Origin: Auanema rhodensis
Lineage: Eukaryota > Animalia > Nematoda
Length of the DNA stretch: 64,000 bases
Reading direction: 5' to 3'
NCBI GenBank assembly: GCA_964057225.1
Contig: OZ059898.1
Location: forward strand, 16,244,001-16,308,000
Positions 33,401 through 46,948 of this stretch are shown here, piece after piece (position 1 is the stretch's first letter; each line of letters starts with the position of its first letter). The position numbers and the translations under genes were made by a program. A model generated the notes under the pieces. It was not told the origin of the DNA, did not search any database, and worked only from the letters and a program-made list of their open reading frames with translations.

Positions 33401-35632
33401 TTATGACATTTCAATTTTTCTACTTTTTTCTGCGTCAACGTCGGATACTTTTTCTTTACCCCATGACTGTGTTTCAGCTGAAATACATATTGATTTTGTA
33501 AATTAAGTTTCTGTTACCTGAACCACAAAAGAAAAAGAATGTGCCAGAAAATAAGTTGATGATGCTGCATATTATGAAAAGATTGGGCCATTTACTGTCT
33601 GGTGTTAATAAACTGAGAGCACTCAAAATCATAGGAGCAGAAAGATTTCCTAAGGTTCCAAAGATCATTGCAACAGATCCCATACTTCCGGAATGCCGAG
33701 GAGCTAAACTGAGCATACTGGTGTAAAAACCACTAACAGTAGCAGAGAGGAAGAATCCTATAAAGGTGAAATTTGCAAGAAGTTCGTATATAATATGTTT
33801 TCACCTATAGCTCCTAATATTATATGAGCTAAATATGGAGTATGACATGACGGGAAATACGCTAAGCAGAACATTGCTACTGCTGATCCAGTAGAACCTA
33901 AAACCGCCGGATATTCACATGAGAAATTTAAAGAAAACCGATGTTACTTATTGTCTGAAAAATTCTGACGGCTTTGGTATGTGTCACAATTTTATTTCGC
34001 TTCAGGTAATCAGCTAAAATTCCTAGTATATTCTTGAAAACCAATTGATTAATGAACGGAATTGTTGAATAAAGTCCGTTCTATAAAACGTTACTTTGAA
34101 TCATCAAAAAGATATGCGTACCGAAGCTATAGGGAGATATAACTCTTCTTTCAAATATGTGGGAACAAATGCTTGCAAAAGACTAGCTTGCAAATTAAAA
34201 GCATATTGACAACAAAGTGCTGCCCAAAGTGGAGCTGATGTAAGAAGTTGTCTCCATGGAAGCATATGAGATTTCTAATTATATAAACTATTTTTTGACC
34301 TGAAAATCTATCAAACCTTTTTACCACTTGGTACGGTCATTGATAGATATTTTTTCTCTTTCTCTGACATCCATTTGTTAGAATTAGGAGAATTTGTAAA
34401 AACCATGCCCCAAACTATCATCCAAACAATTCCTAACGATCCGAACAGATAAAATATTGATGGCCAACCCCAAGACGATGCACACAGCTCCGCTGATATT
34501 AAAGTAGCGGCGATCATAGCAATCTATAGAAGTTTAGCTTCTTATTGATTTATATATTATTTTACCTGATTACCAGAGGTAAAAATAGCGGCCATGGATG
34601 ACCGCTCGTTAGGAGCGAACCATTTTCCTGCAACAGAGTTCAAACAAGGGAAGGTGAATCCCTTAATCATTAGCGTTCATAAAGACTTTTTATATTTATC
34701 AATTACCTCACCCAATCCCATCATTATACGACTACCGAAATATGCATAGTATGAGAATCGTGCTGTCCAAGGTGTTAACAAAGTTACAACTACATAATCG
34801 AAAACCAGCGCTGGAAAAGGATATAGTTAGAAATAGTATTTTTTAATTCTCTTAATTTATCCCCTTTTTGTCTTCATTTTATATAATTACTTTCTTTCAA
34901 TTAAGGATTCATAAATATTTAGGTACAAACTTTCTGCCCTCAAAATATGAATATTCAATAACGCAACAGGCTTATGTGCAACTTTTTTCAACCAATGCAA
35001 TGAAATGAAAATGAGGTTCCGTTTACGTGACAAATTGATCAAGTCTATCATGATAATTTCAGGACAAAATGATATAATATAGGCAACTTCAGACATCACA
35101 ATATTACCTAATAAAAGAACTTTCGCTCCAAAACGATCGGCTATGTAACCAGAAAAACTTGTTGTCACTAAAGCTCCGTAAAAAGTAGCTGAGAACAATA
35201 GAGATTGCATATGTGGAGACCATAGTAAATCACCCTGAAATATCAAAGTTCAAATATCAGTCAATTTTGATAAAACAACTCGCGTTTCGTAAAGGTGTGG
35301 TTTGATAATTATTGCAAGAAATACACTTACATTGTAACCGGATTCAGATGCCAATTCTGAATTTTCTAAAACATTAAGGCAGGCCTCATGAACGCTGACA
35401 TTTGATGATGTTTGCTGTACTGGTGTGGAGAAAGCAGTAGAGTTTACCATGCAAACAACAGCCATACTAAGATCAACTCTCATAGATACTGATGTGGCAA
35501 GTCCTTTAGATATTACATTTAAGTTTTTTACATGAAACGCGAAGCTATGTTACCTAACATCATTAATAAGCATATTTTAAATCGTAAGGAACTAAAGCTA
35601 TAAGGTGATACATGCTCAAATTCTTCTTGCAT
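33401..35632 (-). CDS. SLC17 / anion:cation symporter (MFS) family transporter
   Basis: Motifs MRVDLSMAVVCMVNSTAF, WSPHMQSLLFSATFYG..GYIADRFG, ERSSMAAIFTSG, GWPSIFYLFG, PWRQLLTSAPLWA, LAPRHSGSMGS and C-terminal GSAETQSWG. Multi-exon. Confidence 0.93.
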
Positions 35633-36445
35633 ATCTAAATATCTAAACGAAATAATGTTTTAAATGAAAAACTGAATTTGAAACAGGCCTGGCAACAGAG
35701 CCGTAACTGAAAACACTGAACATAATATTTGATTTCATCTTATATTAATATGTATATGATTAATCCTTGCCTCAATTTGCATGATATCATGTCGGTGAAA
35801 GTGTTAGGAATAGAGGTTAATACTAGTTTTTAACTGATTGTTTTTTGAAGAAAGATAGATCAACTAATATCAAAATATGAGGGAATAACGTCATATATGA
35901 TTATTAATTATAATTCTTTAATTGTTTTTTCTTTGAGCAAAGAAAGATCAAATAACCAAATGGTTGGACTTAATATAGCAATCTGTTACTAGTCTTCAAC
36001 TGTCTTTTTAATTTTGTATAAAGTAATTAAGAATGGTTTAAGAGATGTGATAACATAATTACAATAATCACACCTTTATGATTTAATCCTGTGTTCATTT
36101 CTCATATCAAACTGTTCGATCATTGCAATGACTTTAATGCTTTGAACTTTCTCTTGCCCATTAGTTCGTTTGCACTTTTCGTGTTCTTCTCTGTTGAGTA
36201 GATATTTTTCTGCAGTCTACAATTATGTTCATAGATTGACCATTGAGAATACTTTTTTACATCTTTGTTCATGATCCGGTCTCTCACCCACTCTTTCAAT
36301 TAACCCTCTTACTGGTCAACAACGACAGACCTTTTATTGGAGGACATCTGCCTCTCTTTGGTGCTCTCCCCACACACCATCGTCTATTCCCCCCCACAAA
36401 TCGCACAATGCGAATAGAAGCCGCAGACAGGCGTGTTTTTCGCCC

Positions 36446-36453
36446 TATATAAA
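36446..36453 (+). promoter_or_regulatory. Candidate TATA box of amx-1 (~200 nt upstream of the TTTTAG likely trans-splice acceptor at 36650-36655)
   Basis: TATATAAA at the end of a GC-richer block (36320-36445) between the divergent SLC17 and amx-1 genes. Confidence 0.35.
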
Positions 36454-36657
36454 CCATTCTCTAATTTATACAAATAAAAATAATATGATTTTTAAAAAAA
36501 TATATTTTATAAAATATAATTATAATATTTGCTCAAAAACGTAAATACTTTCCTTTGTTTGACTATGTTCTATAGCGTAAAAAATGTGGCCAATCGTTAG
36601 GTTATTGATTGATGTTCAATTGGCATTTGTCTGATTATAGTTTTCTCTATTTTAGTA

Positions 36658-37408
36658 ATGAGCCGGTATCCTAGCAGATCGCCTCGTAAAAAGCCAGAAG
36701 ACAATGATGATATTGATTTGTTCGATCCTTCTCCTATCAAAAGCCGTTTACGCTCAGCCTCGAACTCACCTAAACGGCCCGCCAAGCGTATGAAGGTTTG
36801 AAGAGATTTTGAGAAGATCTGTTTAAATTTGGATATTTTGTTGTTTCAGCTAGAGTATGACAATAACTTTGAGGATGAATCGCCTAATGTCTCTCCTCGT
36901 ATTAAACTACGAAGAGAATGCGCTGAAGCTGCGATTAAAAAGATCAAACAGGACGGAAAACCCGATGATAAGGAAGGAAAGGTTTTCAAATCCTTTCATG
37001 TTATTTAATTTCATTGTAAGATACTTAAGGGAGAACAGAATGATTCACGAGAAGGTTCGTGTGAAAGAAACGAATGTGCGTTACAAAAAACATGTTGTTT
37101 GACATTATCTACAAGGTAATACCAAAGTTGTTGATTAATCATTCAGAACTTCTCCTTATAGTTGTGTTGGCTCTGTAGCTGATCCCATGGGAAAACTTTT
37201 CCACCATCTATCTCGGAATGAACATGTTTGCCACATCTGTTATGACATCTTGTGGAAACCGTAAGATTGTAAAATATTATTTACCTAATCAAAATTTCCT
37301 TGTAGTGGCACTAAATTCGGTCAAATCTTCACCGATTGGAAAGCTAGTTGGGTAGAGGAAAGTCGATGTAATCCAAGTGTTAAAGCTTTTATTATGGTAT
37401 GTTAATTG

Positions 37409-37461
<53 letters not shown>

Positions 37462-40400
37462 GAATGTATAAAATGATATTCAGGATCAAATTCTTCCATA
37501 TTGGGTATCTTGTAATGATTGTGGAAAATATCGAAGTGTGGTTTCTGAAACTGTTTTAACATATGATTTTTTACTTTCTTACACTTGCTCAAACTGTAAA
37601 ATCAATGAAGAACACGTAAGCTTTTTTTTGAAAACTGTAATTTGGTTTTTTTCGTTCAGGCAGCGTTAGATGCAAAAGATTTCTCTTGGATATTTTCTAT
37701 CGCTGTTAGTCCTTTGTTACAAAATTCACCCAGTCTTCATTACCTTCAAGGTGGACATTACTTCTATGATGAGTTGGGACTCAGTCCTGTTGAATGTAAA
37801 TACGAAACATTAGGTTTTATAAATATCCAAAGTTTATACATCTATACTTAAATTTAGCATGTCGTACATCTGAATTCATGTATCCTTTCAATATTCCTGA
37901 TCAGCAATCAAAAGCTTTTTGTCTTCGTCCTGATGTCATGGAGTTTGATGAAGTGGTATGTTTATACTATCATATAAGTAAATCAAATGTCTGTTTAGTC
38001 ACATTTTCCTGAATATTCCAACGAACCTGTATTATATCTAGCTATAAGAAATCTTATAGTAACATTATGGAATATTAATCCATTTGTATGTTATGATCTA
38101 GTTTTGAAACAGAATTAATTTATTTTATTAGACATACCTAACTTTGGAAAATTGCATTCCTCACCTTGTATGTCGAGGCTTAGCCCGAATATGGTACATC
38201 AAAGAACTTGGCCGTATTTTAGGATATCTTTCCTCTAAAAATATAATTAACTATGGTGTTCTAGATGTACCGAAAGAAATTATAAGTTCCCAAAAGGCCA
38301 GTTAACAACTTAAATCTATTTTCTTAATTTTATATTGCGTTTTAGAAGCAACTTGATGTGATTATCGTAGGTGCTGGTATAAGTGGTTTAGCTGCAGCAC
38401 GTCAATTGAGAAACTATGGTGTTAATGTAAAAGTATTGGAAGCCAAAAATCATATTGGAGGACGAATGAAGGTATCTGAATATTTACTAATTGGAAATCT
38501 AATGTAATATTCAGGACGATTGGAGTTTAGGGGTAGCTGTTGGTTGTGGTGCTCAGTTAGTTACAGGAAGTATCAATAATCCTATCATTCTTATGTGCGA
38601 ACAAGTAAATTGAAGTTCTCCTTAATATATTTTACTAACTCATTAAGATTGGAGTAAATTATCGAATAGTAAGTGGAACATGTCCTATGATTGATGGCCA
38701 GTCAGGTAATGCCATCGACCCCAAGGTAATCAGGAATTTCCATACCAGTTTTTTTAATAAAAGAAGTTTTAGGTTGATCGATTAGTTGAGGAGCATTTTG
38801 ATTGTATTTTGGATGCTTTGTTTACTTGGAAATCAAGTTCTTCTACTCCACAAGATGCTAGTTTAGAAGGTAAGATATTTTTCTATAGTTTTTCACGTTC
38901 GCAGAAGTGCATGTCCTACAAAAGAAAACTATATGTCTGCATGTATTATCTCAACCCACTTTTTGTTCTTATCATCTCTCTTATGCCGTTGATATTACAT
39001 TGTACAATGATGTATTTTGTGTCTGATTATCTAATTTCACATTTATATGATATGACGTTTCTTGTTTAATCGTTGTTTTCGAATCTGTTTCATAACAGAT
39101 CTACCTTTTTTCCACCTAAGTTTCAGATTTTCTATTTTTCATTCAAGCGCTATGACGTCTACTGAAAAACCGAAAGAATCATCATCTAGTATCAGCTTTA
39201 ATGTTTTGTTTGCCTTTTTCATAGCTGCCCTTGCTGTTGTATATTTCAATACGAAGGTTGAAACTGTAAGTTCAACTTTTAATCCGCATTTATTTCTGTC
39301 TTTTTCCAGTATGTTCTTGTTATTCCTAAGCCTGAAGTATCGGATAATGGAGAATTAACTTACAACTTAATTGTTGTTACGGATCTTGATCATGACAGTA
39401 AAAGCACTACCAAGAAAAATACTTGGGAGAGTCATGTTAAATTAGGAAAATTGAAACTCTCGTACGCTACTTCCATATAAATATTTTTTATTATACTATT
39501 TGTTCCAGAAAAGAAATGAAATCAGCTGAGCTAACTTGGGATGAATCTAGTGAATTCCCTGTTAAAACGTATATTTAAAAATATTCTTCTCTTCTCATCT
39601 TTCATATTTAGACAAATTTCTGCTGGAGGTCGAGCTATGGAACTTTCCGACTTATGCATATTCAATGGAAAATTACTTTCCATTGACGATAGAACAGGCA
39701 TTGTCTATGTAATTGACCAAAAAACTGTATGTTTTTTCTGCTTTAAATTATTTTTTAATGATTTGTTTTGAGGCTTACCCTTGGGTTATTTTAAATGATG
39801 GACCTGGAAATGTTACCAAAGGATTCAAGGGAGAGTGGATGACAGTAAAAGATAGCATGTTATATGTAGGAGGATTAGGAAAAGTAAGGAAAAAAAAAGA
39901 AAATAAAGTTAAAATTTTCATTTGAAGGAATGGACTACTACTACTGGAGAATATGTAAACGATCATCCAATGTGGGTGAAAGTTGTTTCTACTAAGGGAG
40001 AGGCAAGTTCCAACTTCTATTATATCTTACAGTTAGCTGTTGTTTTAGGTTCAGCACATAAACTGGTACAATGCATTTGTCGAGGTTAGGAAAGCATTAG
40101 ATATTGAATACCCTGGGTACATGATCCATGAAGCTGTTCAGTGGTCTGCTACGTAAGTGTTTCTTCTTCAAAGTTCAAATATAGAATTTCTTCAGACATA
40201 AGAAGTGGTTCTTCCTTCCCCGTAGAGCTAGCAAAGAAAAATATGATGAAACCGCCGATGAGACCAGGTAATGTCTTACGAAATGTTTTTTTTCCTTACA
40301 CACATGTTTACAGAGGAGTCTCCGTTCTTATCGAAGGAAGCGAAGATTTAACTAGCTTCAAAGCTCATAATGTTGGTGTCAACCCAGACCCGGCCAGAGG

Positions 40401-42098
40401 ATTTTCAGCTTTCCAAGTATTTTGTTGAAAGTTGATGAAATTAGAACCGATCTTTTAGTTCATTCCTGGTACAGAAGATAGATTGATTATTGGACTGAAA
40501 AGTGAGGAAAAGGATGGAAAGCCAGTCGCTAGCTATGCTACCGTATTTGATGTCGAAGGAAATGTAATTCTTCCAGACACTCCCTTAAGTGGAGCTTATA
40601 AATACGAAGGAATCAGCTTCTTCTAATTTACTTAAATTCATCTCCTTATATTCCGCATTTTCAATAATTTTTACTTGTTCTACTTGTGGGTTGAGATTTA
40701 GGTAGAAACAATAAATTATGTCTTACATGATGCATGCATATGTAGTGTTATGATTGTCCTGTTGTTTCTTTGTCTATGTGATATGTTTATAAAATATTAT
40801 TAATTCTTTTTACAGATCAAGCCTCACTTGTTCATAAAACTTTACTTAAGAAAGCTAACATCAAATGGGGTGATAAGGAAGAACGAGCATTACAATTCCA
40901 TTTTGGAAATATTGAATTCTCTTGCGGAGCTAAAATGAAAGACGTGAGTTTGTTTTTAATTTTTAAATCTAAGTTCTTTTGTTTTAGGTTTCTTGGCGTC
41001 ATTGGGATCAGAACGAAGCCGTGGCTTTGTTTGCTGGATCTCATGCTTTGCTAACTGATGGTTCTTCAGTAAATTTTAAAGATATGTGCGCACAAATGAA
41101 AATTATTTTCAGGAAGTTCTGAAAAAGCTTTCAGCAGGTACTGATATTCGTACTAATCATGAGGTTAATCGTGTAGAATGGTCTAATGATAAGAAAAAAG
41201 TATCCGTATTTTGTTCAAATGGTAAAAAACTAGTCGGTGATAAGGTGTGTACTTTTTTTTTTAATTTCACAAAAGTTTTGCTCAGGTTCTAATTGCTCTT
41301 CCCTTATCTGTTGTACAAAAACAGTCTGTAGTATTTGATCCCGTATTACCAAAAGCAAAGAAGCATGCTTTAACTAAAATAGGAGCTGGACTTATCGAAA
41401 AGGTGTGTTATTTCTGTGGAAAAGTTAAATATCTTTTTCAGGTTGCTGTGAAATTTCCCAGAAAATTTTGGGCTTCAGTTACAAAAGATGGTGAATGCAA
41501 TTACTTCAGCTTAGTGCCAAAAAAGGGTATGGATCGTGGACTCTTCAATATGTTTTACGATTTTTCTAGTAGGGTAAGAGTTCTATCCTTGTCTTCAATC
41601 GTGAATTGTAAATCTTAAATTGTTTTTAGGGTTCTCCAACTAAACAACAAAAACATGTTTTAATGTCATATGTATGTGGTGATAGTGTTAATATGGTTAA
41701 TCAGATGAGTGATGTTGAAGTTGTTGATCATTTCGTTGATGTTTTGCGATCAATGTTCCCTGATGAGGTGAGTATATAAACATTTATATCAGTGTAATCA
41801 TTGTTATTGATAGGATGTTCCTGACCCTGAAGGTCATGTGGTTACCCATTGGGGTCGTGATCCTCACATAGGAATGTCTTATTCATATGTTCGTGTTGGA
41901 GGTAAAGGGGAACATTATGATTGTTTAGCCTCTTCTGAGAATAAAAAACTTTATTTTGCGGGTGAAGTAAGTGCTTTTCGATTTCAATTAGATTCTGCTG
42001 TATTTCAGCATACCAATCGCTTTTTCCCTCAAACGATGACAGGCGCTTATTTGAGTGGTTTACGAGAAGCTGGAAAAATGTTGGAAGACATACAATAA
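36658..42098 (+). CDS. amx-1: LSD2/KDM1B-type FAD-dependent histone lysine demethylase
   Basis: N-terminal Cys/His zinc finger (SCERNEC...CC...C...[15 protein letters not shown]). zf-CW ([17 protein letters not shown]). SWIRM ([16 protein letters not shown]). FAD fold [13 protein letters not shown]...[10 protein letters not shown]. Catalytic-Lys region [12 protein letters not shown], then [13 protein letters not shown] and [23 protein letters not shown]. Intron 38870-40815 joins in phase (G|AT = D). Confidence 0.95.
37409..37458. repeat. (TA)n microsatellite in an amx-1 intron
   Basis: Visible directly in the sequence. Confidence 0.9.
39152..40626 (+). CDS. apy-1: Calcium-activated nucleotidase / apyrase (CANT1 family); 10 exons, nested on the same strand within amx-1 intron 38870-40815
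   Basis: N-terminal signal-anchor [17 protein letters not shown]. Motifs [99 protein letters not shown]. Intact frame. Confidence 0.95.
40710..40715 (+). terminator. Probable polyadenylation signal of the nested apy-1
   Basis: AATAAA 84 nt after the apyrase stop, followed by GT/T-rich sequence. Confidence 0.6.
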
Positions 42099-42391
42099 GT
42101 TTTAGCTTAGCTTAGTTTAGTTATTGTTGTTCAAAAATTGTTATACTCGTAGTTATGAAACGAATGTGCCAATATTCATGATCTCTGTTTTCAAACTATT
42201 CATATATATTGAAATTATTTATTCTTATTCGCATAATTGCTTATAAATATTATAGATAACATTAGTTTTAAGATTCTTAATTTACATTATAAATTAGGTT
42301 ATTCGTATCAAATATATAATACAGATAAGTTCAATTAAATTATAAATAAATGTTGCTCAATGAGAAGCTCCTAAGTTATAGTTATAACTAC

Positions 42392-45300
42392 TTAACATTT
42401 ACCTCCATTGAGGAGAGCTTTAAGATTGTCTTGAGCATCAGCATCTAACCAGAATGAATCTTCATCATCGTGCATACAGTATGCACCAGATTCATGAAAT
42501 CCACGAGGACATTGCGAAACTGGAAATACATATAGTCAATAAATTTTTATCTGGAATTGCATATTGCAAAGTAAGGAATATAAAACTTACAGCATCTTCC
42601 GTATAATAGCATTCCGTCCTTACATTGACACTGAGCGACGTTTTTATCACTCTTTCTCTTTTCGCAATACGTATTTGGACATCTGGATGAGCATTCAATG
42701 TCTGTGGAACATCCATACTCTCCTGGCCACAATTTCCTTAACAATATAATTATGATATAAGTACAAAAAAAGATATTTCTTACATTCTACATACACCGTT
42801 AATACATTTTTCATTGGGTAAACAAGTGCTATCAGGATCAATTCCTAGATCTGTAGAGTTGGAAAGGCAATTACGAACTTGAGCAACATTGAAGAATACT
42901 ATAAAAGAAGTGAATGCATAAAAAATACCAATAAATGCTTACATGGCTGATCAGTAATATTTCCTGTTGGAGCAAAGATTGGACGTCTTCTAGCAGTTGA
43001 AAAGACAAATCTGGAAAAAAAACAGTCCCTTAGAAAGTGCTCAGTATACTTACTTGCAAGGAGATCCGTACTGATCACATCCATTTCTAGCAATGGTAAG
43101 AACATTTGGTGGCATACGGATACATGATGCCCCGTTGGAAGATGAACCACTACTGCAAGCACATACACCTTGAACACACTGAGAACATCCATTGTCATAT
43201 CCATTACATTGGGTGGATGCTTGACATGTTGATCCAGGAACTTGATTGTATATAGTTGTAGCTAAAATAGATAAATGTCTTAAGAAGAAGAATATTTGAA
43301 GTCTTACCTGAGCTGCAACATGTTCCCATAGCACAAGATGATCCAGTTGGACATACACTATTGGCTGAACATTGGCAAATAGCTGTAGATCTTTGAGGGC
43401 AAACTGGCTCCATTGAAAGTGGGCAGCATCCTCCTAATGGAGTACATCCATACCCAGGAGGACACTCTGTACCACGGTTACAACGTTGAGCCGATCGTCC
43501 GCCGTTTGGACACAAAGGTAAAGGTTCTTGGCAACATCCTCGTCCTTCACATACATATCCTATTGGGCAAGAATTTCCAGTTCCACACACGGATGCAGCA
43601 ATAGATCCAGTAGAACACATTGGTATCGGGCAACAAACTCCATTTTCGCATTGCTAAAGAAAAAATAAGAAAAATACTGGATTTTAACCCTCTTACATGA
43701 CCAGGAGAGCAACCAATGCCCATTTGGCATCTCTGAGATGCAATCAAACCGGAAGGACACCTTGGCAATGGACAGCAGCCACCATTGATGCATTCAGACC
43801 CGCTGGAACATGCTCCTGTACAAGCAGATAAGGCAACAATTCCTAAGAAAATACAATAATTAAAAAAAAATTATAACTTTTTTGAATGGTACCTGATGGG
43901 CATTGAGGAAGTGGACAACAACCTCCATTCATACATGAATGGCCTGATGGACAGCAGTTAGTGCAACCTCCTGAGCAACTGAAAAGTTTTGAAAAGTAAT
44001 ATGGGAAAAGGAATGAAGATAAGTACCGTTGAGTACTGACAACATTATTGGAACACATTGGTAACGGACAACAAGCTCCATCAGCACATTCAACTCCAAC
44101 ACGGCCACAGTCAAGAGTTCTTGAGCAAACACCTGAAGAAAACAAGAAGTAAATGAGTAATACCATAAATCTGTTCGTACCAAGAGAAATAATTCCATTT
44201 GGACATCTAGGAAGTGGACAGCATAATCCGTCAAGACATGACAAACCAGATCCACAAATACGTCCTTTAGTGCAACGAGAAGCTGCTTGAACACCGGTAG
44301 GGCAGAAAGGATTAGGACAGCATCCACCGTTAGAGCATTCCATTTTAGGTCCACATTCCTAAAAGTAAGCAGAGTTAAATAAGAGATTGAAGTTGAAATA
44401 TCAATTTAAAGAACTTACTGAATCAACATAACAACGTTTATTACTCTGTTGTCCGTTACTACATACAGGAAGCTTGATGTTTTCTTGGCAGCAAGAGCCA
44501 TGCTGCTTGAAGCATTGACCAGTCCCACAAGATCCAGAAGCACAAAATCCTACTGGGTTCTATAAGAACAATATTAGTATCAATATCAAACAAATAATTA
44601 AAAAATACCATTCCAGATGGGCAGGACAAAGGACAACATGCTCCTTGATAACAAGCTAATCCATTTCCACATCCATTTCCACAAGGTGTAGTGGCTGGTG
44701 ATCCATCTAGAATGCAATATAAGCTATTAATTTCTCATCTTTTATATTATTACTTGGACAAAGTAAAACAACATTGTAAACAATATCAGTTGATGGTTGA
44801 GTAGCTGATGGACAGCACATATTCATTGCTTGATTACATAATGTTCCACTAGGGCACGAGCCACATACTCCAACAGGAGGAGAATATGATCCTGGGCATA
44901 AAGCTGAAATGAATTTTGCAAATAAAGAAAAAATCTTTTTTTTTTCATTATTAACAACCGCCGGAATTGAATGTAAAATTCGAAAAATTATTCTATGAGC
45001 TATTGAAAAATCATGTGAGTACCACGCTTTTATGAAAATCAACCAAAATTCTTACTAATTTGAATAGTTGGTTGAGCTGGTTGATTAATGTTACCAACAG
45101 GTAATGGACAACATCCAATTCCGGGAGCGCATGTGGAGTCTGTAAACTATCTTTATAGACAATCCGAAATAATAGTTTGAACAAACATTGAGGACAAGTT
45201 TCTGTACACGACGCCAATGGAGCAATATGCGATCCAGGACAAACTGAAATCAACAAGTTTTCTTTCTTATTCTATCTATTTTTTGAAAAGGCGGTTTAAG

Positions 45301-46948
45301 GACTTCTCAAATAGAAAAGTGAACCAAGAACTTTCAATCTGTATTGGAAGGTGTTTCACTTACGAGGTGCTTGATTCTGGATGAAATTTCCTGTGATAAC
45401 ATCAGTTCGTTGACAACAAACATTCTGAAACAATTATTATAGAAATATGATAGTTATTAAAAAGTTTTTACGTTTTGACATGTGGTTACACCTGGGCAGG
45501 AATTTGAAACTGCTGCTTGGGCACAGCTACATACAGGAATCTGAAGTAACTTATTGCGCATAACCATATATATTTAATATATAAAGAGACCTGTTGTGAT
45601 CCGCATGCATTTTGAGAAGCAAGTGGAATACAGACAGCAGCATTAGAATCAAATACAGTACCAGTAGCGCAAGGTAACCGTTGCCATTCACCACAACCAG
45701 CACTAGAAATATTTTTTTGTAAAAGTATAATATGCAACAGAAATCATACGTAGTAGATTGTGCAGCACATTGAAGGAAATAAGCATTACTTGCTGTATCT
45801 CGTTGAAGTTGAGCTGTTAACCAATTACATGGAGAACCAACCAATGGATTGGTGTTTGCAGCTAAATTATTATTTTGGATCAGATTTACATGTATAAACT
45901 ACCTGAACAAGGTGTTTGACATCCGTTCGTGTTAGGATTCTGACTACAAGTCGCTTGTTGTCGTCGGAAAGTTTTTCGATCAACACAACGTTGCTTTCCT
46001 TCATCAAATTCGTGTCCTTGAGGACAATCTCGAAGGTTCCAAACTCCCAGATACTTATTCTTCAAGCTATATCCTTCGATCTATGTATTTACTAAATAAG
46101 TTTGCCTAATAGTTAAATGAAAACCTCTTCTTTTCCCAGTGGAGAACATTCGTAAAACTGGGATGAGTTATCGGCTTTTCGAAAATGCTCAACTGTCATA
46201 CAAACATGTCCAGACGCAACGTTAGCTTCTATAATTAAAACTTAACAGATAAAGAGAAAAACTATGAATTTCAAGTGTTTGTTCTGCTTCCAAAAAAGCT
46301 GATCCATATTTTTCAAAAAATAAAAACGTTAAGCTAAAGCTTAGCATATAGAAGTAAGTCTAGTTTTGATTTTTGAACTATTAAAAGAAAAATACGACAG
46401 TTTGAAAAGCGAAAAGGAAACAGGTAAAAATCCCAAATTCTCATGTTTCTTATGCATTTTTTCTTTGGAATACAACAAAAAAAAGAAAACAATTGCCGTT
46501 CATTTGTTCACAATACCAAACAGAAGGAACATCTGATCTATTTGTTCTTGTAATTTTAAAATGAACATAAGAGAAAAAGCTCAAATAAGAAAATGAGAGA
46601 GAAACAATGTTGAAGATGGAAAATGTACTCTAAAGATTAGACAAAATCTGAAAGAGCCGACTCAAAAGGCCTTGATAATAGATGAATCGGGACAACAAAC
46701 ACTGAATATACCAATGTATTTCATTTCATTTCTTATAAATTCTTGAAAATGAAATGTCCAAGTTCAATAATACAATTAGATGAACATATTTAGAAAAAAA
46801 AATTGTGTATTATGGAACAAACAATTGAGAAGAAAATGTGTTTTTGAGATGAAACGAGATAAATATGGAATGAAAATTCATTGTTAGACTTACCATTTGA
46901 TGAGGCTATTTGAAAATGTGCAAATAGTAAATAGAATATTAAGAACAT
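42392..46948 (-). CDS. Secreted cysteine-rich extracellular-matrix-type protein: chitin-binding type-2-like modules, many CC/Cys-rich repeats, C-terminal EB-like modules
   Basis: Signal exon MFLIFYLLFAHFQIASSN. ChtBD2-like segments SQFYECSP...DCPQGHEFDEGKQRC and YFLQCA...LPCATGTVFDSNAAVC. Tandem C-x-x-G...C..G.CCPLP.C repeats. C-terminal PGEYGCSTDIECSSRC...QCQC..G...YGRCF. Stop at 42392-42394. Confidence 0.88.

Follow-up and report, generated by a model that had tools for sequence, protein, structure and literature searches.

How can two multi-exon genes both yield mRNA when one of them lies, on the same strand, inside an intron of the other? This question is raised by a 64,000-nucleotide stretch of the genome of the nematode Auanema rhodensis (assembly GCA_964057225.1, contig OZ059898.1, positions 16,244,001 to 16,308,000 of the forward strand), which we call the window and number from its first letter. 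An earlier reading of the sequence, referred to here as the original prediction, had described a complete apyrase gene (the guest) within an intron of the gene for an LSD2-type demethylase, amx-1 (the host), and had taken this arrangement to be new. We conclude that the locus very probably holds a real and very old same-strand nested pair, with the apy-1/CANT1 ortholog placed in intron 14 of amx-1, the LSD2 ortholog of nematodes. Its novelty did not survive comparison with other nematodes.

Gene models of host and guest

The host model was built from the reading frame and from the number of exonic nucleotides (nt) per bin of RNA depth. The gene runs on the + strand and has 22 coding exons for an LSD2/AMX-1-type protein of 847 amino acids (aa). 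Exon 14 ends in phase 1 at 38869 (...GAA G/GTAAGA), and exon 15 begins at 40816 (TTTACAG/AT CAA GCC...), where it completes the codon split by intron 14. The remaining 20 coding introns measure 39–87 nt. The original prediction had the frame stopping at 38869 and resuming in phase at 40816, with a gap of 1946 nt among short introns; these coordinates are exact, and the alignment with LSD2 is continuous across them. A second long host intron, which that prediction did not mention, precedes the first coding exon. This GC-AG intron (35497–36655, 1159 nt) has the donor GCAAGT at 35497 and its acceptor AG at 36654–36655, and joins the leader exon to 36656, 2 nt before the ATG. The 3′ untranslated region (UTR) of the host extends to about 42170–42234. 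An Rfam scan of the whole window returned no RNA family; therefore, the long host introns are not explained by a spliced leader (SL) RNA or a snoRNA.

Pfam searches with the exon translations gave the domain order N-terminal zinc finger, zf-CW (3e-7), SWIRM (1e-3) and flavin amine oxidase. The last of these is interrupted by intron 14, with NAD_binding_8 and positions 1–30 of Amino_oxidase encoded on its 5′ side and Amino_oxidase positions 328–443 on its 3′ side. When host exons 12 and 15 were compared with all PDB chains, only human KDM1B/LSD2 matched: residues 441–466 correspond to 382–407 of chain 4gu0_A and residues 530–565 to 470–505. The net offset against human LSD2 across intron 14 is thus a single residue, and no coding exon is missing. 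Exon 14 searched alone against PDB gave no match. The full-length relatives of the host are nematode SWIRM/zf-CW amine oxidases with 52–74% identity. Judged by these relatives and the PDB matches, LSD2 appears to be a closer relative of the host than LSD1 or any other amine oxidase.

The guest encodes a protein in which seven exons match consecutive blocks of the Pfam family Apyrase (PF06079: 47–82, 85–121, 122–146, 147–179, 182–204, 207–238 and 239–290), together spanning positions 47–290 of 291. Six of the seven match at an E value of 1.6e-5 or better, and exon 9 at only 0.12. This unbroken series confirms the splice sites placed between those exons, including intron 6, a GC-AG intron with the donor GCAAGT at 40003. 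Exon 10 matches the human CANT1 chains 1s18/2h2n at 2e-10, and the protein is 59–66% identical to nematode apyrases over about 310 aa. A hydrophobic stretch at residues 15–31, read by eye from the translation, is a candidate for the N-terminal signal-anchor of an ER/Golgi type II enzyme. By sequence, the guest is identified as the ortholog of the secretory-pathway Ca-dependent nucleotidase apy-1/CANT1. Model, PF06079 and CANT1 matches agree in this respect with the intact nine-intron gene at 39152–40626, in host orientation, that had been described before, and its own AATAAA is found at 40710.

A search of intron 14 for terminal or target-site repeats found none, and thus nothing that would point to a recent transposition of the guest. 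Not one of its nine donors (39265–40416) is in phase 1 (chance about 0.03); consequently, an apyrase exon joined to host exon 15 is always out of frame. Mis-splicing of the host donor to either apyrase acceptor leads to a stop within 3–10 codons. Mis-spliced chimeras of host and apyrase would therefore all be nonsense transcripts.

RNA from the locus

The RNA data consist of assembled contigs from one study with four runs (X1–X4). Since the contigs at the locus lack every intron, they represent RNA. All nine apyrase introns appear as contig joints in all four runs, the GC-AG intron as 40000>40047 with three ambiguous letters. A separate apy-1 mRNA with all nine introns removed is thus present.

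The host joint 38869>40816 is absent from the 15 joints that were listed of a total of 29, and is required by three independent fits. First, the bin depths of all four runs are matched to the second decimal only if the host-upstream contig covers 38864–38867 and continues at 40814–40843 (two ambiguous AG letters were assigned to the right side of the joint). A contig ending at 38869 misfits by 0.06–4.4 depth units in three informative bins of every run. The tail of the host-upstream contig after 38294 measures 421 nt in each run, exactly 28 nt more than the 393 exonic nt that reach to 38869. Finally, the 29 joints equal the introns of both models minus the one across a (TA)n repeat in host intron 5, which is skipped in the joint listing. 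The junction named in the original prediction is hence supported by depth bins, tail lengths and joint count, and a bridging host contig follows in four of four runs: full-length amx-1 mRNA is made by splicing from 38869 to 40816, with the whole guest removed as one 1946-nt intron.

Separate contigs represent host-upstream, guest and host-downstream sequences, with depths of 43/301/85, 6.4/113/26, 37/202–278/65 and 43/211/57 in the four runs. The k-mer depth of apyrase is 5–18 times that of the host-upstream contig, and this ratio differs among samples. The host-upstream contig crosses the donor without a branch in all runs. Both this contig and that of apyrase end at 40843, the position expected when two paths that share the preceding AG merge at 40816 in a k=31 graph. 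We conclude from the common end that exon 15 is reached by RNA of two types: in the first it is spliced to exon 14, and in the second it follows colinearly on the apyrase 3′ UTR. Table 1 collects the features of the locus.

Table 1. Features of the nested locus in the window, and the corresponding loci of other nematodes
Feature	Position	Strand	Description
Host leader exon, 3′ end	35466..35496	+	loose contig end in X1, X3 and X4 maps uniquely there
Host coding exons 1–14	36658..38869	+	residues 1–524 and first base of codon 525
Host intron 14	38870..40815	+	GTAAGA...TTTACAG, phase 1, 1946 nt; contains entire apyrase gene
RNA-free stretch	38870..39105	+	236 nt; candidate internal promoter or outron; depth bins, 4/4 runs
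Apyrase 5′ UTR	39106..39151	+	candidate (trans-)splice acceptors TTTCAG/A at 39127 and TTCAAG/C at 39148
Apyrase coding sequence	39152..40626	+	10 exons, 357 aa, CANT1/apy-1-type; 9 introns of 42–47 nt
Apyrase exons 1–5	39152–39265, 39310–39461, 39509–39568, 39612–39726, 39773–39883	+	
Apyrase exons 6–10	39928–40002, 40049–40152, 40196–40267, 40314–40416, 40459–40626	+	
Apyrase AATAAA	40710..40715	+	83 nt past stop; sole AATAAA between stop and host acceptor
U-rich spacer	40716..40815	+	100 nt, apyrase poly(A) signal to host 3′ splice site
Host coding exons 15–22	40816..42098	+	residues 525–847, remainder of amine-oxidase domain, stop codon included
Spacing in the window			stop codon to host acceptor 189 nt; AATAAA end to first exon base 100 nt
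Pristionchus fissidentatus (L013)		+	host residues 489–523, apyrase, host 520–544 onward, all on this strand; stop codon to host acceptor 359 nt; AATAAA end to first exon base 110 nt
Caenorhabditis auriculariae (L014)			same host-apyrase-host order, annotated as three genes; stop codon to host acceptor 172 nt; variant TATAAA end to first exon base 109 nt
Mesorhabditis belari (L008)			same host-apyrase-host order, annotated as three genes; stop codon to host acceptor 240 nt; AATAAA end to first exon base 99 nt
Heligmosomoides polygyrus (L005)			apyrase, 228 nt, host exon from residue 525, annotated as fused 664-aa protein; stop codon to host acceptor 228 nt; AATAAA end to first exon base 106 nt

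Nesting in other nematodes

Loci in other nematodes were found by searching with apyrase exon 10 and in follow-ups, and were then probed with the two proteins of the window. At the DNA level the same intron is occupied in at least four other rhabditine genera, and the arrangement is thus not peculiar to this genome (Table 1). The annotation of P. fissidentatus contains an 875-aa SWIRM/amine-oxidase gene with a nested apyrase, the one correct public case.

The other public entries for this locus are chimeric or split because gene predictors cannot handle it. Fused SWIRM, amine-oxidase and apyrase predictions exist for Auanema sp. JU1783, Diploscapter pachys, Nippostrongylus brasiliensis, Dictyocaulus viviparus, Haemonchus placei, Angiostrongylus costaricensis and A. 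cantonensis, in addition to H. polygyrus, and AMX-1 is split in M. belari and C. auriculariae. This affects at least eight nematode proteomes, whose AMX-1 entries should be corrected. In the fused predictions that were aligned (H. polygyrus, Diploscapter and D. viviparus) the downstream host part begins at host residue 521–526, and a separate amine-oxidase model from N. brasiliensis (P0270) begins at residue 525. Auanema sp. JU1783 is the closest relative of the window, with 74% identity to the N-terminal half of the host and 71.5% to the apyrase. The original prediction had held that the same nesting in the annotation of many nematodes would make it not novel. This is what we found, since the nesting is annotated in P. 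fissidentatus, and besides the four genera examined at the DNA level the fused predictions imply it in at least six more. In its simplest history, the nesting would predate the split of diplogastrids and rhabditids.

The arrangement has also been lost. In C. nigoni (L007) we detected no amx-1 exon within 10 kb of apy-1, which fits the statement in the original prediction that C. elegans has amx-1 and apy-1 unlinked; there, amx-1 presumably lies on another chromosome. The apy-1 gene of C. nigoni retains the Vps52 and Band_7 neighbors of C. auriculariae in the same order. In derived Caenorhabditis the guest thus appears to have stayed next to vps-52, and both halves of amx-1 to have left the locus. 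Only 257 nt separate apy-1 from Vps52 in C. nigoni, where the 1.5-kb 3′ half of amx-1 is cleanly deleted and the 5′ half is replaced by a zinc-finger gene. The surroundings of the Strongyloides ratti apyrase likewise show no nesting.

A maximum-likelihood tree separates the nested gene from a paralog. One apyrase clade (support 100/97), with copies from Auanema and P. pacificus among its members, is not nested but adjoins a Ctr copper-transporter gene. This clade includes neither the nested copies nor Caenorhabditis apy-1, and the nested copy of M. belari is sister to Caenorhabditis (88/92). Three candidate loci were rejected as not nested: L011 (D. viviparus), L010 (Auanema) and L009 (P. pacificus). 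By the tree, the apyrases at L010 and L009 are the Ctr-adjacent paralog, and Auanema and D. viviparus have their nested copy elsewhere. Protein P0014 (778 aa, C-terminal apyrase) was also dismissed as a host-guest fusion, being a repetitive mis-prediction without similarity to amine oxidases.

Two further observations concern these families. At L009 and L010 the second apyrase lineage lies directly upstream of the Ctr gene in Pristionchus pacificus and Auanema sp. JU1783. An Apyrase-Ctr fusion is predicted in Aphelenchoides besseyi (P0202); here, too, gene predictors are misled by conserved neighbors on the same strand. The AMX-1-like protein P0294 of Dirofilaria immitis (843 aa) carries the NCBI name "Amine oxidase and Apyrase domain containing protein", and its listed Pfam domains do not include Apyrase. 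This name may hint at linkage of amx-1 and apyrase in filarial nematodes (clade III).

Spacing between the guest poly(A) signal and the host acceptor

The interval from the apyrase stop codon to the host acceptor contains exactly one canonical AATAAA in the window, H. polygyrus, M. belari and P. fissidentatus, and only a TATAAA in C. auriculariae. In the four species with the canonical signal the gap to the acceptor is 99–110 nt, an operon-like spacing that is a new finding here. The probability of four gaps falling within 11 nt is about 5e-4 under a uniform null. The distance from host donor to apyrase, by contrast, ranges from 282 nt to more than 2 kb across species. In C. elegans, intercistronic distances are mostly 50–200 bp with a median of 129 bp (PMC7668243). 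The spacing points to a constraint that links 3′-end formation of the guest to the acceptor of the host.

RNA is continuous through this spacing. In all four runs the apyrase contig of the window shows no break between exon 10 and 40843, and so includes the 3′ UTR and crosses the acceptor. Four independent RNA contigs of H. polygyrus (L001–L004) likewise leave the last apyrase exon, pass the spacer and end 29 nt inside exon 15 of the host, which repeats the merge pattern of the window. Such continuity of contigs from guest to exon 15 does not prove single molecules. The depth fit of the four runs revealed no contig with foreign letters before 40816. Downstream of this position the first in-frame Met is residue 564; a transcript starting at 40816 would thus encode only a C-terminal fragment, and a protein-coding role for it is doubtful.

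One tentative reading, which we rate as improbable, is that the locus forms an operon inside a gene, made up of apy-1 and the 3′ half of amx-1, in which acceptor 40816 is used in two ways. On this unlikely scheme, 40816 would serve in cis-splicing to exon 14 when the guest is skipped. Where apy-1 is made instead, the acceptor would be trans-spliced to an SL2-type leader or would keep the polymerase going, a use to which we give an equally low probability. If such an operon existed, use of the guest poly(A) site would set the amount of full-length demethylase mRNA. This switch would have been under selection since before the diplogastrid/rhabditid split, and the C. elegans group would represent its natural knock-out.

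Origin of the apyrase mRNA

RNA is absent from 38870–39105 in four of four runs, in which the bins are fully accounted for without coverage there. The apyrase contigs start at 39106 (X1), 39125 (X2) and 39146 (X3 and X4), and those of X3 and X4 carry 32 and 5 extra 5′ letters that match nowhere on 36500–42400. Positions 39125 and 39146 are the AG of the acceptors at 39127 and 39148. The last letters of the SL1 leader are ...GAG, and the alignment of a trans-spliced read would therefore begin precisely at 39125 or 39146. Both acceptors had been singled out in the original prediction, together with their short distance from the host donor and the lack of an AATAAA between. The contigs of X2, X3 and X4 indeed break exactly there, 257–278 nt past the donor, and no poly(A)-signal-like hexamer is found between the host donor and the apyrase ATG. 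A scan of 38800–39200 for bacterial-type promoters and terminators was discarded as not meaningful for a nematode.

The mechanism that we favor consists of the following steps. Transcription of apy-1 probably starts on its own within the 236 nt past the host donor. The 5′ end would then be trimmed at 39127 or 39148, probably by SL1 trans-splicing, and the 3′ end would form past the AATAAA at 40710. The guest 3′ end and the host acceptor would be functionally coupled, either through a spacing that lets polymerases continue into the 3′ half of the host, or through a host acceptor that doubles as a trans-splice site.

We also considered that no internal promoter exists and that apy-1 is carved from the amx-1 transcript by SL trans-splicing at 39127/39148 and cleavage past 40710, such that each host transcript gives either amx-1 or, mostly, apy-1 in a mutually exclusive switch. 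The contig breaks at both acceptors and their location 257–278 nt past the donor, with no poly(A) signal between, are in line with such carving; outrons are short-lived, so an empty stretch at 38870–39105 is compatible with it as well. Furthermore, RNA contigs of H. polygyrus extend without a break over more than 2 kb of host intron that precede the apy-1 ATG, which fits transcription entering from the host as well as a distant internal promoter. However, the guest is 5–18 times deeper than the host-upstream contig at a ratio that varies between samples, and this contig is unbranched at the donor in every run. The X1 contig reaches 39106, beyond both acceptors, and 38870–39105 is empty even at a depth of 301. 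We therefore regard carving as unlikely and lean towards an internal promoter as the source of apy-1 mRNA, because of the X1 start at 39106 and, taken cautiously, the variable ratio of guest to host depth. The H. polygyrus contigs (L001–L004 against L005:1–1972) follow the genome colinearly over more than 2.3 kb of the presumed host intron before they reach the apy-1 ATG and the spliced apyrase exons. A long outron, retention of the host intron or a start site far upstream might explain this stretch.

In a locus with a shared leader, as in cha-1/unc-17, the exon ending at 35496 would be spliced either to 36656 (amx-1) or to 39148 (apy-1). The 32 letters before 39146 in the X3 contig match nowhere on 36500–42400, and the leader exon lies outside that stretch. 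Nevertheless, these letters also fit the remainder of a 20-letter SL plus adapter, the contigs of X1 and X2 are colinear upstream of 39148 (to 39106 and 39125), host contigs go from the leader to 36656 with no branch reported, and no joint from leader to apyrase was seen. We rate a shared leader as very improbable. Least probable of all is that the host is in fact two genes, one for the N-terminal SWIRM/FAD part and one for the C-terminal amine oxidase, that flank the apyrase, or that the region is misassembled. The three-gene annotations in M. belari and C. auriculariae would suit two genes, as would the deeper 3′ half of the host. Against them stand the bridging contig in all four runs, the continuity of the reading frame and LSD2 alignment across intron 14, and the consideration that neither half alone could work as a flavin amine oxidase. 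With the same order in independent assemblies of at least five genera, two genes and misassembly alike are already contradicted for this genome.

Several points weigh against an ancient nested pair with its own promoter and a coupled 3′ end. The contigs come from a single study and are blind to 5′ caps, spliced leaders, poly(A) sites, strand and true levels, and the joint 38869>40816 comes from arithmetic rather than from a printed joint. Contig depth reflects expression poorly, and the deeper 3′ half of the host could result from simple 3′ bias; with this and with four points only, no weight is given to a fit of host 3′ depth as host 5′ depth plus a fraction of guest depth. SL1 is a guess, since the additional 5′ letters in X3 and X4 were not read, and the RNA that reads through into exon 15 could be unspliced host pre-mRNA, just as the upstream continuity in H. 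polygyrus could reflect transcription from the host. Among the related loci, the contig of H. polygyrus ends before the 5′ half of the host, so that only 3′ adjacency is shown there, and the TATAAA of C. auriculariae is a variant hexamer picked after the fact.

Comparison with known gene arrangements

Among the nested genes of Drosophila 71% are antisense to their hosts and a minority of 29% share the strand; 72.5% of these same-strand guests have a single exon, and the median intron number of the intron-containing ones is one (PMC3814207). Work on nested genes in C. elegans has centered on 567 antisense pairs (PMC12274878). Like same-strand nested genes in these two animals, the apyrase gene lies wholly in one host intron, the coding sequences do not overlap, and the two genes have separate mRNAs and unrelated functions. 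In contrast to the same-strand guests of Drosophila, it has nine introns, outexpresses its host and has kept its place across a nematode suborder. A nine-intron sense guest amid a catalytic domain is therefore the far end of a known distribution and not a new category.

With the SL2 operons of C. elegans the locus shares the common strand, the gap of 99–110 nt from AAUAAA to acceptor, and the continuity of RNA across the junction. Here, however, the place of the "downstream cistron" is taken by an internal exon, the 15th of 22, whose normal cis-splicing partner is a donor 1.9 kb upstream. The cha-1/unc-17 locus, where VAChT lies in the first intron of ChAT and the two share a leader, is similar in that a same-strand guest has long been conserved in a host intron; it differs in that no shared exon was seen in the present case, the intron is in mid-gene within the catalytic domain, and the products are unrelated. 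The proteins themselves are ordinary. The guest matches Pfam Apyrase 47–290 and CANT1 structures, as expected for a relative of human CANT1 and C. elegans APY-1, and the host has the zf-CW, SWIRM and amine-oxidase layout of human KDM1B (LSD2) and C. elegans AMX-1 (PMC8357103). Compared with CANT1 and KDM1B, only the genomic relationship is special. Our literature search found no publication that mentions apy-1 and amx-1 together, and none on coupling of 3′-end formation to cis-splicing through such a spacing.

The locus provides a clean test case of a multi-intron, highly expressed sense guest inside an essential-looking domain over a very long evolutionary span. Each amx-1 mRNA requires the spliceosome and the 3′-end machinery to ignore nine introns and a canonical AATAAA, and the near-constant distance from guest poly(A) signal to host acceptor hints at coupling between 3′-end formation and cis-splicing. 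Nesting is kept in basal Caenorhabditis, Pristionchus and Auanema and lost in derived Caenorhabditis. As each of these groups can be grown in culture and several are open to genetics, the effect of nesting on amx-1 (germline H3K4 demethylation, DNA-damage response) is directly testable.

Neighborhood of the locus

The leader exon of the host, which ends at 35496 (region 35241–36656), lies opposite a coding exon of a transporter-like gene on the minus strand (33477–35549). Host contigs carry several hundred to about 1500 additional upstream letters, probably mRNA of this neighbor that was merged by unstranded assembly. The long first host intron contains, just upstream of the first coding exon, a G+C-richer block (36240–36460) with a TATATAAA motif. 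This block has no match in Rfam and may be the promoter of a shorter host transcript.

Host intron 5 is filled by a (TA)n/(TATACA)-type microsatellite (37399–37470) and is the only other intron longer than 60 nt. GC donors occur in 3 of the about 31 introns of the 7-kb region (GCAAGT at 35497, GCCAGT at 38297 and GCAAGT at 40003), two of them with RNA joints. The usual share of GC donors is roughly 1%, and this locus seems to be far above it. Finally, a long gene of repeated cysteine-rich modules (for example GGCCPLPxCPSG) lies tail-to-tail with the host on the minus strand (42400–46100) and is expressed, as evidenced by a 3039-nt contig in run X2.

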